Assembly (NCBI GenBank): GCA_965637545.1 | Contig: OZ281494.1 | Location: 13,640,001 to 13,704,000 of the forward strand | DNA from: Phallusia mammillata | Taxonomy: Eukaryota | Length of the DNA: 64,000 nucleotides | Direction: 5' to 3' | Shown here: positions 26,320 to 62,673 of the stretch, piece by piece | Numbering within the stretch: position 1 is the stretch's first letter | Layout of the letters: each line of letters opens with the position of its first letter | Made by a program: the position numbers and the translations under genes | Notes under the pieces: generated by a model | Database searches by the model: none | What the model was told of the DNA's origin: nothing | The model's input: only the letters and a program-made list of their open reading frames with translations

Positions 26320-29300
26320 CTATTGTTGTTTCTTGGCAGCTCTGCCGTCGGCACCTAAAAATTGAAAGATTAAATAAACACATATAATGGTGATGTTTGC
26401 TTTGTTTATTTGGCAAATCCGCTTAGATTTACAAACATATTGTGCTAAGGCAACGTACCTTCAATGTAGTTACGTGCCACCCATTTGAGTCCCTCATCAA
26501 GACCAATAACTGGAAGTGAGATCTTGAGTACCATAAACCATTCATTCCAGTTGAGTGGGCAGATTTGGAACACCATCTGCAAAACAGAAAAATCATTTTA
26601 AAAATTTAAATCCTTTAAAAGGTTAAATTGAAATTGAACAACTTTAAAGAGGTTTAAAGTTAGGGGTACAACTTACTGGGAATGGATCAACATAAAGGAT
26701 GACGAAGTGAAGAGCAAGTGAGAGAACGATGGCTCCGATCAACCACATATTTTGCCATGGTGGCATACGGAAGAGAGACTGATTTTCAGAGACACTATAA
26801 AGAATTCCAATATCGTTAAAACGTTGTCATTCCTTGACTGTTATTTTACTTTGATAAAACCAAATATAAGAGAAATGTGAAAGTATAAAGTATGTGTGAG
26901 ACGAACCTGTTGAGGGCATTGCACAACTCAATCACGACGAGGACAGATAAGGCCATGGTCATTGGGTGGGGATCTTCGAACACATGGCAGTCAACTCCAG
27001 CGAAATCTTCGCTATCAGCAGTGCAGGACATGAAGTGAGTCTAAAAATTGTCAAAATCAGTTGCTAGCAAGAAACCATAGATTCACAAAGAAAGGGGAAC
27101 TATGTCGCTACTACTTTAATTCACAAAGTTAGTTTATAACGGGAATGTGTCAATAATTGAATAATATGCTTCAAAGGAATAAGATCCTAATGTGGCAAAT
27201 AAGATAATAATGTTTAGAAGCTTACCACTTGCCACCAGGAAAGCATGGGTCCGTTACCAGCGTACAAGAACCACCACAAAGAGGCACCAACTGTTGCAAT
27301 ACCAACATATCCTGAAAACAAAAGATAAATGAGACACTGTTTTTTGTTGCAGAACCGTATAGAAAGGTAAATATATCACAAAACCGTGGAGATGCTTGGT
27401 AAGTTCTTTTTTCCACTTTGGTGGAATTATACTAAAACATTTTTTTTTAATTTTTTTTTAATTTCTCTGTACGTACCACCGACGGCACAGTAACGGAGCA
27501 TAAGCCATCCGCTGATGAGGGAGTCCTTGGTGGATCGTGGCTGTTTCTTCATGATGTCGAGGTCGGCTGGGTTAAAGCTGAGTGCGGTGGCTGGCAAACC
27601 ATCAGTAACCAAGTTCACCCAGAGAAGTTGGACAGGGATAAGTGCTTCAGGAACACCAAGGGCAGCAGCCAAGAAGATGCTAAAACAAAACAATAAATTC
27701 GTTTTTAAAGAGCACGTGACATCCTAATAAACATCAGTCTATATTTAATGGGTTGTTAATGTAAATCTTGTCATTTGTTTGCTGAGCAATGCGTTCGAAA
27801 AGTAAATGTTAAATTACCAAACGACTTCGCCGATGTTGGATGAGATAAGGTATCGGATAAACTGCTTCATGTTGTTGTAAATGGCACGTCCTTCTTCAAC
27901 GGCGGCAACAATAGAAGTAAAGTTGTCATCAGCCAAAACCATGTCGGATGCGCTCTTCGCTACAGCGGTTCCACTTCCCATAGCAATTCCGATCTCAGCT
28001 TTCTTGAGTGCTGGGGCGTCATTCACACCATCACCAGTCTGTCGAAGTACACGGAAAGAAAGTCACGTTAAAGCAAAATATCAAGATATGAATGTAGTGA
28101 ATTTAAGCGTTACTCACCATAGCAGTAACGTCACCATTGGCTTGGAGGTACTCGACAATCTTGCTCTTGTGTGCTGGCTCGACGCGGGCAAAGAGACGGG
28201 CACGAAGGCAGGCTTTGAACTGCTCAGATTGGGGAAGGTTGTCAAACTCACGACCAGTGTAGGCCTTTCCTGAATAGAATAGAAAATATTGCTTTGTGAT
28301 GTCGTTCTAACATTCTTTAAGTTGTGGTGGAGGTCTTGACCAACCTGTGGTGTCCTCGTCCTCGCCAAACACGCCAATACGACGGCAGATAGCTTCAGCA
28401 GTGGCCTTGTTGTCACCAGTGATCACAATAACCCGGATACCAGCATCACGGCAATCGTGGACGGCTTGAAGAACTTCAGTTCGGGGTGGGTCAAGCATAC
28501 CGACGATACCAACGAAGGTGATTCCAGTCTAAAACAAATTTTGAAACATTAAGGTTTTAAGTTGCAACTACATTGACCTGTAGATATAAAGTACTTACCT
28601 CGTATTCAACAAACTTGGTAGAATCTCCAAGATCCATTTGGCTTGGGCTGGGTGGGGTGTCAATGGTTCCGAGGGCCAAGCAGCGAAGGGTGTCGCGACC
28701 GGTTCCGTATTCTTTCACCAAGCTCTGGATTTCAGCTTTAATTTCTGGGGTCATTGGCACTCGTTGTTTGCCAACACGGACGTATGTACAACGATCGAGT
28801 ACTCCTGCCAATTGAAACAAGGAGTTAAATTAAGATACGAGTATATTTTTTCATTATGAATTATTTAATAAGATTGAACTTGATTTTGATGTATGTAACG
28901 TCGTATTAGATAAAATGCTTTAAACTATATCGTATTGGCTTCCGACCTTCTGGTGCTCCCTTGACAAACATCTTGGGTCCGATAGCTGATGGGGCTGTTG
29001 GTCGGCAGAAGGCGCTCATTGATTTGCGGTCACGTGAAAACTCGAGAGTGAATTCTTTCTTCATCATGCTCTTGATAACCTACAAGCAGGGAATGAATCA
29101 GTTCTGTTTGTACATAAGTAGATGTTGTATTGTGGGAATGACAACTTACGCTGTTGCATGGATGGGAACGGGCTGACTTGCTGAGGCCACTGAGGTCGGT
29201 GTTGAAAACGTTCATCTTTTCGCAGAGGACAGTAAGGGCGGTTTCAGTAGCTTCACCAACTTTCTCGTAGATACCTTTGCTCTGAATAAATAGGTAATGA

Positions 29301-60100: not shown

Positions 60101-62673
60101 AGCTTGGACAGATCCATGTTGTAGACGTTCATCTTCTCACAGAGGACAGTCAATGCGGTCTCGGTCGCTTCACCAACTTTCTCATACACGCCTTTGGTCT
60201 GCACGCAATGTTAATTTTGTTACTTGTTGTTGGGTTAAAGGCTATGGGCCAATTTCCCATGAGACAAACAAGATAGAAATACATTTGCACTCGGAAAACA
60301 GCAAGGTTAGATGTGTCAGAAATATGGTCGGACAAAATTATTTAGTCAATAGGCCTGTTTAAACGTTAGAAAGGTTTATTGCTTGGGTAAGCCAATGTGA
60401 ACAAACACATTTTTGTGTGGAAATAAAAATAAAAATATTTGCATATACCGGTTTAATTCCGATGGTAAAAATACACATGTCAAAGTGTTAAATATCGAAT
60501 GAGTTTTCGACCTTTAACAGTTTGTAGTTAAAGAAATTCTCTAAACCCCATTGGCCCCCACGGTCACCTGTGAGGGCCAGCACTTCAGGGGCCCCTGAAA
60601 CACACCTCGTGCTACCCTCGGATACCATAGGGACTTGGTTGAGAAACGCTAATTTAAACTATAGTGTCACATTGAGTCTTTATTAGCCTAAAAAGAGGAC
60701 GACAACCAAAGAGTAACAGTTTTTTTGCAATAACATCACGTCGAACCAGCGGTTCACGCAGGTTGATCAACGTCAGATCACGCAAAAATAGCAGACGTAC
60801 AACGTCACTGGGATCAATACAAATAGAATCATCACACAAAACCCACCTCGTTATAATCGAGCGAGGAGTCGTTGCACTGAGCACAGATCACAGCTAGCTC
60901 AGTGAGCGAGTCAAACTGTGAACACGTGACCTTCTTGCCCTTGAGTGTGACGTCACCGGTCGGTTCGTAAGTGGATCCAGAGACTTCGAACTCGTGGAAG
61001 GCGGCGCCACTGTCGGTGACTTTGTCCACCACAAACATCTGGAAAAAAGAGTAAGAGAAGTGAGGATGAGAAGAGAAGTGACGTAGCTGATCAGTGAATT
61101 AATGTTTACTAAGACGTTAGATATTATGGTTTAAATGGCAATGTGCTTTATGTAGATTTGTTCATCTAAAAATCCGTTAAACAGATTTAATGTGGATTTT
61201 CTTTTTAAAACCTAATTTTTAACATATTTAAGAAGTCAGACAAAAATCTAATAATATTGATTTCATTTACGCACCACTGTCTGGAATGTCTGATAGCAAG
61301 ACTAGATTACATCGGTACGCAAACATGCGATGAAACCTAATTTTACATATTAAATCAGTAAAAACCATATCAAACGGGCTAAATTACAGGTTATGTTGAT
61401 TGCTTTAGAAGTATATTCTATGTTATATAGTTGCAAAGTGAATGGAAGTTCGATTCCTTCCTCGACATGCGCAACGGCATATGTCATTGAGGCAAGACAT
61501 AACAAAGCAGTGCATGACGAAAAATTTTCTATTTATACATCCACTCCACGTGTAGTGGTGTGACGTTAGAAAAGAACTGGTAATTAAATCTTCTACAAGG
61601 TCTCTCTAGCAAATACAGTGTGTGCGTGTATTTGTGTGTGATTGTATGAACGTATTGCACCGTGGGCATTCGAACAAAGATGGGGAAAATCTAATCTACA
61701 AACGTGTTACATATAAGCTATTTAGAATACATTCGTCAAGAACATTTTTAGCCACCATTACTTCAACCTACATGGATAACATACTATATCCCCCGTTACA
61801 TAAAATGTGTTACTCACCCTGCTGACAGACATCTGGTTGGTGGTAAGGGTGCCGGTTTTGTCAGAGCAGATCACTGAGGTGCAACCTAGGGTTTCAACAG
61901 AAGGCAAGCTACGGACGATCGAGTTCTTCTTCGCCATTCTGCGGGTCCCGAGCGCTAAGCAGGTGGTGATGACGGCTGGGAGTCCTTCGGGGATAGCGGC
62001 AACGGCAAGGGCGACCGCGATCTGCAAATGTGGAAGCATAAGAGGCATTAGGCATCGGTGGACATAACCCACACAGGGATTATAATTTGTTTTCGGCTTA
62101 AATGCTTCGTCAATAGCATGAACGTGACAAATACCTACAACCATTTGTTAGAAATGGGCCACTGAAAGTGTTCAGTTTGAGCTGAACATGACGTAACACA
62201 CATGTGACGTAATCAAACGTGCAGCGATTTTTTTTTGTAGATTTGTCTGCTCATAAAATCTGAACTGGTTTAATGGGTCTAACCATAAAATCGAAAACCA
62301 AACAAAGGCAATGTTTTAGTTAACGATTTCATGATTAGACAAATCAAACTAGTTCAGTCGGGTCAAACAAGGTATAACAAATACAAATCCTTTATAAAGC
62401 AAAACAAAACCCCTCTACAACGAGGCCTTTCTGCGCAATTACCCTTCAGTCGACCTTAGCAGGCAAGGACTATTTTTGACAAGAATTAAGGTCGTATTGC
62501 GTCAGGTTAAATGAACCGGCCTGCTATCATTTAGATGCAGTTAAACGTGAGCACCAAAAATATCTTACCTTAAAGTAGTAGATTGCCCCTTTGATCCACG
62601 ATCCACCATGGACTGGGTCGTTAAAGTGTCCGATGTTGATGGCCCACACAGCAATGCAAATCACTGATATGAT
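51153..62673 (-). CDS. ATP2A: SERCA Ca2+-ATPase copy C (long introns; 5' exons lie beyond the window)
   Basis: Exons run from [20 protein letters not shown] (62673-62569) through DKTGT, KGAPE, GDGVND and WVNLVTDG to WISRNFID. Intron positions match A/B. The most likely last exon is 51190-51153 ([12 protein letters not shown]), but the 3' end is uncertain. Confidence 0.88.
52750..52956. repeat. Foldback/MITE-like element in a SERCA-C intron
   Basis: Imperfect inverted repeat TTAATGCGACAAGTATGCGATATCACT / AGTGATATCGCATATTGTCACATTAA. Confidence 0.55.
53085..53220. repeat. Small foldback MITE (Tc1/mariner-like CAG ends)
   Basis: CAGGCAAATCCGGTTAATCGCA / TGCAATTAACCGGATTCGTCTG inverted repeat; TA on the right flank. 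Confidence 0.55.
53823..54057. repeat. Foldback MITE
   Basis: TACTAAC..CATACCTCACGGCAGACCCACATT / AATGTGGGTCTGCCGCGAGGTATG..GTTAGTA, an inverted repeat of about 35 bp. Confidence 0.65.
55081..55166 (-). other. SERCA-C alternative M7/L7-8 exon, downstream copy (86 nt)
   Basis: Acceptor TTATCACAG, donor GTTAGT; encodes (A)[28 protein letters not shown]. Confidence 0.85.
56214..56299 (-). other. SERCA-C alternative M7/L7-8 exon, upstream copy (86 nt)
   Basis: Acceptor GGCTGTAG, donor GTTAGT; encodes (V)[28 protein letters not shown]. Confidence 0.8.

Follow-up and report, generated by a model that had tools for sequence, protein, structure and literature searches.

The 64,000-nt window of the Phallusia mammillata genome analysed in this study contained three intact genes for the calcium pump SERCA, here called A, B and C, arranged in tandem and in the same orientation (minus strand). 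When the complete assembly was searched with exon sequence, exactly three SERCA copies came up, all of them within this cluster. Gene A (31349..26320, minus strand) and gene B (46555..41524, minus strand) are compact, with coding spans of 5030 and 5032 nt, respectively, each divided into 21 coding exons by introns of 67–185 nt that sum to 2.0 kb. Both encode proteins of 1002 residues that differ at four residues, and position 26320 is exactly the stop codon of gene A. Gene C is long. Its in-window part (51782..64000, minus strand) holds coding exons 9–22 and one alternative exon, and position 62673, where the range given by a first-pass annotation of the window ended, is the 5′ end of the ninth coding exon (residue 263). 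The gene runs on to a start at extended coordinate 71859 (L004:7859; G000:C1:13711859), beyond the window, and covers about 20 kb in total. It comprises 22 coding exons and the alternative exon, with introns of 76–4672 nt summing to 17 kb; the largest in-window introns are 2397 nt (from 55081 to 52683) and 1368 nt, and eight exons, with the 4672-nt intron among them, lie upstream of the window edge. The sizes given earlier for A and B (5.0 kb each), the range of their introns and the maximum of about 2.4 kb for the in-window introns of C were all reproduced.

The three genes were recognised in a six-frame self-comparison of the window, which yielded three collinear sets of conserved coding blocks whose best-conserved frames were all on the minus strand. 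Exon models were based on conservation between the paralogues, on continuous reading frames and on splice sites, and the neighbouring 10 kb past the window edge (L004) was added to complete gene C; the reference protein P0184 lacks M7-M8 and gave no guidance for that part. The joined protein models were used for local BLAST, alignments and trees, and database searches were run per exon. A protein search from one N-domain exon returned only fragments of up to 377 residues, and arthropod-biased fragments served as scaffolds for tblastn. Single exons matched the Pfam families Cation_ATPase_N, E1-E2_ATPase, Hydrolase_3 and Cation_ATPase_C, and all exon matches in PDB were to SERCA1 or SERCA2. When translated, all three models contained the phosphorylated-aspartate motif DKTGT, the hinge motif TGDGVND and the Ca2+-site motifs, including the M8 glutamate in ‘IE(L/M)’; we take the Ca2+-site residues in M4, M5, M6 and M8 to be the equivalents of SERCA1a E309, N768/E771, N796/T799/D800 and E908. 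All three proteins fell inside the SERCA clade in trees. Judged from these sequence features, the locus is an ascidian SERCA locus (P-type ATPase, subfamily IIA), and the trees place the genome of the window among enterogone ascidians. A terminal exon of 35 nt (A, 26320-26354; B, 41524-41558; minus strand) gives A and B di-lysine-type C-termini, KKQQ and KKHQ, respectively. Similar KK-containing ends were seen in SERCAs of Ciona, Halocynthia and Styela, and models of A and B lacking this exon read through into spurious tails of unequal lengths.

The feature that sets gene C apart is a pair of alternative exons for the membrane helix M7. The upstream exon, Cup (56214..56299, minus strand; GAS.WW...WQV class), has an intact frame, and the downstream exon, Cdn (55081..55166, minus strand; ASASWWF...WQL class), lies 1047 nt away. 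Both are 86 nt long, have AG/GT borders, are entered in phase 1 and are left in phase 0. Genes A and B each have a single M7 exon of the same length (A, 27226..27311; B, 42383..42468; minus strand); both have AG/GT borders, and the two are identical at 86/86 nt. At the amino-acid level, the A exon is identical to Cup at 21 of 29 residues and to Cdn at 17 of 29, and Cup and Cdn share 14 of 29; the first-pass annotation had reported the exon sequence and the first two of these identities exactly. The M7 exons map to residues 842/843-870 of rabbit SERCA1a, which make up the luminal part of M7 and the beginning of loop L7-8, and Cdn is the closest of the three to rabbit residues 843-870 and thus the most vertebrate-like. 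Since a length of 86 nt is not divisible by three, a C transcript with both exons goes out of frame and stops early, at residue 888, and one with neither exon does so at residue 849. Therefore, only transcripts carrying one exon or the other can encode a pump. In their structure, Cup and Cdn resemble mutually exclusive tandem exons: homologous neighbours of equal length and phase, with their own splice sites and a frameshift penalty. Transcription of gene C was observed directly. In six RNA-like runs, about 7% of the sampled words from a 4.5-kb stretch of C were found, which is the share expected of exons alone, and one of four runs (X14) yielded a spliced contig of 982 nt joining 56901-56698, 55166-55081 and 52683-52550. 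This contig confirmed the junctions 56698|55166 and 55081|52683 and showed that gene C is transcribed with the downstream exon Cdn.

The compact genes are recent copies of each other. Over a stretch of 5.7 kb, exons and introns alike, A and B align collinearly at 82% nucleotide identity (96.6% in exons and 78% in introns), and their synonymous divergence (dS) is 0.157 at a nonsynonymous divergence (dN) of 0.0017. Both genes are under strong purifying selection (dN/dS ca. 0.01). The first copy of the duplicated unit, comprising the upstream spacer and gene B, spans 41431..50612 (ca. 9.2 kb, with homologous flanks). The second copy, comprising the spacer and gene A, spans 26224..41425; about 7 kb of additional sequence has enlarged its spacer, and the two copies meet at about 41425-41431. 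Four pairs of homologous segments keep their order between the copies: 50548-50612 with 41361-41425, 50252-50324 with 41154-41226, 48339-48554 with 32146-32354 and 47070-41431 with 31897-26224. The sequence comparison indicates that this duplication is recent and specific to this lineage. It is the window-specific part of the history and is in itself ordinary.

The separation of A and B from C is a different matter. A and C share 83.7% of protein residues and differ at more than 20% of coding positions (about 3% between A and B), their dS is about 1.07 (saturated) and their introns are without any similarity. To place them, metagenome sequences were scanned with the exon in front of M7, which led to an ascidian contig of 9 kb (L005) and to many full-length metatranscript open reading frames (ORFs), and a tunicate-like ORF (L006) used as a query led to named tunicate SERCAs. 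Proteins of two types were found in other ascidians. A-type proteins, ca. 90% identical to A and ca. 83% to C, occurred several times in Ciona intestinalis, as well as in C. savignyi and Clavelina (P0304), and C-type proteins, closer to C, occurred in Ciona (P0318) and Clavelina (P0313). With the M7 columns excluded from the tree, A, B, L005, Clavelina P0304 and the Ciona A-type proteins formed a clade (support 99), which was nested with C, Ciona P0318 and Clavelina P0313 in an enterogone clade (support 99). Since the A-type clade extends across these species, the split between A-type and C-type genes predates the divergence of Ciona, Clavelina and Phallusia, and the split between A and B came afterwards.

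The gene structures of the other species agree closely with those in the window. In Clavelina (L086), the C-type gene measures 14.3 kb and the A-type gene, which lies 3.4 kb downstream of it in the same orientation, 5.6 kb; the former has a Cup-class exon upstream (L086:19980-20066) and a Cdn-class exon downstream (20757-20843), and the latter has one M7 exon. In Ciona, the C-type gene is 17.5 kb long, and its M7 exons (L089:23465-23551, Cup; 24445-24531) follow the same order as in Clavelina. The A-type gene of Ciona is 4.45 kb long with introns of about 57–77 nt and is on the same chromosome. Thus, both species resemble Phallusia in having two gene types, the long one with both M7 blocks arranged in the same order and the compact one with a single Cup-class exon, and Clavelina also shares the tandem order of C-type then A-type. 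Unlike in Phallusia, the two Ciona genes are not adjacent, being about 56 kb apart on opposite strands, and only in Phallusia was the compact gene duplicated and two introns lost. Public annotation of other species already makes this pairing visible: RefSeq lists isoform pairs that differ only at residues 839–867, the 29-residue M7 block (P0390/P0391, P0393/P0392, P0395/P0318 and P0313/P0399). The C-type isoforms of Ciona intestinalis and Clavelina lepadiformis are XP_009861042/XP_009861043, XP_078491536/XP_078491537 and XP_076815494/XP_076815495, and the A-type entries are P0289 and P0304. A long gene with two M7 exons paired with a compact gene with one is therefore an old ascidian arrangement. 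The metagenome contig L005 (Ga0210059_1020503) carries, at 783-6734, two thirds of an A-type gene from another ascidian, 86% identical to A, with one M7 exon and introns of about 300–840 nt. Compaction of the A-type gene is consequently not universal, and on these gene structures it would be either old or recurrent. None of the non-tunicate loci examined had a pair of M7 exons, and every other eukaryote locus of the metagenome scan had a single M7 segment. A set of SERCAs from marine metatranscriptomes (L006, L007 and P0270-P0283) fell inside the tunicates and outside the ascidian genes studied, all with a single M7 segment of the QL class; this group is probably derived from pelagic tunicates.

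Intron positions provided a finer record. The first-pass annotation had described the same intron positions in all three genes, which is correct for the in-window part of C; its full length includes two introns that are absent from A and B. An exon of A at 30414..30580 (minus strand) corresponds to two exons of C (65712-65792 and 65282-65367), and another at 31053-31153 (minus strand) corresponds to an 18-nt microexon of C plus the next exon, with the same two fusions in B. The microexon (extended 71521-71538; L004:7521-7538) encodes a conserved ELPAEE motif, has clean AG/GT borders and was also found in both Clavelina genes and in the Ciona A-type gene. The A-type genes of Clavelina and Ciona keep both introns, and the absence of these introns from A and B therefore represents losses in the Phallusia lineage. 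A and B also share a GC-AG intron 3 (donor GCAAGT; A, 30793..30879; B, 45976-46058; minus strand), where C has GT at the same place. All three genes have a short intron in front of the TGDGVND exon (minus strand; A, 28039-28117, 79 nt; B, 43206-43284, 79 nt; C, 57364-57439, 76 nt), as does the long gene of Clavelina (88 nt), while the other introns of C measure 116–4672 nt; this intron has been lost from the Ciona A-type gene. As blastn aligned A and C through this intron, a conserved intronic RNA was considered, and it was discarded when a multi-species alignment revealed only a short T-rich motif.

In our trees, the tunicate SERCAs formed one clade, sister to those of vertebrates, and the earlier proposal of an origin separate from that of the vertebrate trio thus held. 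The likeness to vertebrate ATP2A1/2/3 is that of one family (72%–76% identity) with several paralogues and alternative splicing. The vertebrate splice variants (SERCA1a/b, 2a/b and 3a-f) vary at the C-terminus and are not known to vary at M7. The C-type genes of Ciona and Clavelina also have alternative 3′ ends, giving proteins of 1003 versus 1029/1030 residues. The paralogues arose separately in the two groups, as indicated by the trees and by an earlier study (PMC3527596). In that study, tunicate SERCAs are reported as monophyletic, sister to those of vertebrates and including recent, independent lineage-specific duplicates (Altshuler et al. 2012; PMC3527596), to which the A/B pair adds one more. 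A term search of its text found no mention of the two gene types, the pair of M7 exons or the relation between them.

The relation of the single A/B exon to Cup and Cdn was then considered. The A-type and Cup exons of the three species share states that are derived relative to the metazoan consensus (GAS-L/I-WW and a terminal QV/QI), and the Cdn exons keep the ancestral QL end with an ASAS stretch of their own. In a tree of the 29 exon columns, the Cdn class (98/93) and the Cup exons of the three species (96/82) were each recovered. The best-supported reading of these sequences, which is not proven, is that the single M7 exon of A and B is of the Cup class. The QV (Cup-like) and QL (Cdn-like) classes of M7 sequence were also present in stolidobranch genes outside the enterogone clade of A-type and C-type genes, one stolidobranch gene clade having the QL class and the other the QV class. 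In Styela clava, isoforms X1 and X2 (P0401 and P0300) differ only within the M7 block, and both are of the QL class. The tree of gene bodies rejected a grouping of genes by exon class in the approximately unbiased (AU) test (p = 0.009 and 0.003): gene bodies group by ascidian order, and the exon classes are common across orders. This discordance fits exon classes that are older than the gene duplications.

We consider that the ascidian SERCA locus was most probably built in two steps, an old split between A-type and C-type genes and a recent duplication giving A and B, and we assign this reading a probability of about 0.8. The first step would date back at least to the common ancestor of Phlebobranchia and Aplousobranchia and would have left two linked genes: a long C-type gene choosing between two tandem 86-nt M7 exons and a compact A-type gene with a single M7 exon of the Cup sequence class. 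The A-type gene would then have lost two introns, and in the second step, recent and confined to this lineage, a 9.2-kb unit containing it would have been duplicated in tandem to yield B and A. Within this two-step history, we slightly favour the possibility that the exon pair predates the duplication into A-type and C-type genes, and that the A-type lineage then lost the downstream-class exon, so that one outcome of a splice choice was hard-wired into a separate gene. A broader extension, which we regard as tentative and rather doubtful, is that an ancestral ascidian SERCA already had both M7 exon classes, and that independent duplications in Enterogona and Stolidobranchia each sorted these classes among paralogues. 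If this extension were true, a splice choice affecting one membrane helix of a textbook ion pump would have been turned into separate genes repeatedly and in parallel.

Several observations weigh against parts of this account. In the exon tree, the clade of A-type and Cup exons received weak support (43/76), and forcing Cup and Cdn together cost 21.9 log-likelihood units and gave a tree that was not rejected (AU p = 0.12). The nucleotide identity of the A exon to the two C exons is almost the same (58 and 59 of 86), because synonymous sites are saturated. The clades compared in the AU tests of the gene bodies were named after the tree was seen, and the discordance could also have arisen if gene bodies evolved in concert or if a short helix converged. 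We infer, and do not consider proven, that the exon pair came before the gene duplication. In Phallusia, no use of Cup was seen in the single spliced contig, which comes from one run, and contigs tend to omit minor forms. Furthermore, gene C has a good candidate donor at 51811, at the place equivalent to the junction of the A/B terminal exon, and a scan for an acceptor followed by a short frame with a di-lysine-like end found none.

Among the alternatives, the one that fares best reverses the order of events at the exon level. Here the gene duplication came first, the C-type gene later gained Cup from its A-type neighbour by unequal recombination or gene conversion, and the A-type gene lost no exon. 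Such a gain likewise predicts A-type and Cup exons as sisters, the genes are tandem neighbours in two of the three species, which favours exchange, and Cdn is the more ancestral-looking exon. However, the gain would have to predate the split of Ciona, Clavelina and Phallusia, since all three have Cup in the same place, and the presence of both QV and QL classes in stolidobranch genes outside the enterogone clade, together with the rejected grouping by exon class, speaks against it. The nonsynonymous distance between the A exon and Cup (0.19) is also not below the gene-wide value between A and C (0.12). We regard late acquisition of Cup as unlikely.

A second alternative is that the resemblance of the A exon to Cup arose by convergence or chance in a segment of 29 residues, Cup and Cdn being closest relatives through an exon duplication specific to the C-type gene. 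The short alignment, the failure of the AU test to reject such a tree and the nucleotide identities, which do not discriminate between the exons, are all compatible with this. On the other hand, Cup and Cdn are the most divergent pair in every species (14 of 29 here, with the same pattern in Ciona and Clavelina), joining them carries the likelihood cost noted above, and several positions are common to A-type and Cup exons over three species. Convergence is accordingly improbable.

It is similarly improbable that Cup is a silent relic in Phallusia, with C making only the Cdn form and A and B supplying the other. The sole spliced contig does skip Cup, the polypyrimidine tract of Cup is poorer than that of Cdn, and the word share of 0.07 in the six RNA-like runs fits three exons rather than four, as a rough estimate. 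Yet Cup retains an open frame, its exact length, AG/GT borders and low dN against saturated dS; it sits in an intron otherwise without conservation relative to A and B; and RefSeq models of Ciona and Clavelina include its orthologue.

According to the first-pass annotation, one lineage-specific triplication produced the cluster, with C as the parent and A and B as young descendants that fixed one splice form and shed intron length. This proposal accounts for three adjacent genes of the same orientation and for an A/B exon more similar to Cup than to Cdn, but it is refuted for the step between C and A/B, and has almost no remaining probability as a whole, given a saturated dS of ca. 1.07 between A and C against 0.157 between A and B, A-type orthologues in Ciona and Clavelina that are ca. 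90% identical to A and group with A and B to the exclusion of C, a C-type-then-A-type tandem in Clavelina as well, and A-type genes that were already compact in both species. Lineage-specific duplication survives only for the step from A to A and B. Other elements were retained in altered form. An isoform-like exon does seem fixed in A and B, as the exon-level tree groups it with Cup (with weak statistics from 29 columns), as an ancient event rather than a lineage-specific one. A and B are compact as described, and the compaction is old or recurrent (A-type versus C-type gene, 4.45 versus 17.5 kb in Ciona and 5.6 versus 14.3 kb in Clavelina). Synteny bore out the tandem pair in Clavelina and not in Ciona, where the genes are apart and on opposite strands.

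The locus is also of functional interest. SERCA is among the best-understood ion pumps, and its known isoform diversity is at the C-terminus. Apart from the isoforms that RefSeq lists for Ciona and Clavelina, no description of exon swapping at M7/L7-8 was found in the searchable literature. The two exon forms could tune pump properties or contacts with partners or lipids around M7 and L7-8, and the A-type genes might be high-output copies, for example in muscle. A Ciona ‘Atp2a’, which may be of either type, is expressed in tail muscle and in contractile cells of the papilla (PMC7397655), and the literature searched contained nothing on which Ciona SERCA paralogue is the tail-muscle gene. The arrangement resembles two known kinds of system, the partition of splice forms between gene duplicates (isoform subfunctionalisation) and tandem-duplicated mutually exclusive exons, of which there are human cases (PMC9741552): homologous tandem exons of equal length and phase are swapped, and a paralogue carries only one form. 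It differs in being one-sided, with both forms persisting in the long gene and a single form fixed in the compact one, and the order of events is here a reconstruction. The ascidian locus can be viewed as a natural experiment, with a switching gene and a gene in which the segment is fixed, conserved across distant ascidians and adjacent in Phallusia. Two questions become testable there: what the luminal half of M7 and the adjoining beginning of L7-8 contribute to pump kinetics or partner binding, and whether duplication frees a gene from having to make a splice choice.

Some minor features were noted around the genes. Within the ca. 7 kb of extra DNA between B and A, a plus-strand ORF (37939-38010) gave a lone EF-hand match (PF00036, E = 1.7e-7), and the ORFs neighbouring it gave no Pfam matches; the match could represent a fragment or one exon of a gene resembling those for calmodulin or troponin C. 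Downstream of the Clavelina A-type gene lies a PLAC8-like gene (weak Pfam match). Just below gene A, motif inspection revealed cysteine-rich PLAC8-type motifs at 20102-20230, 24788-25003 and 25215-25457 (minus strand); ORF pieces in this region were negative in Pfam, and a cross-species comparison of flanking proteins produced no match. Between these motifs, an intronless ORF of 1062 residues (21184-24369, minus strand) encodes a myosin head (Pfam E = 2.8e-168).

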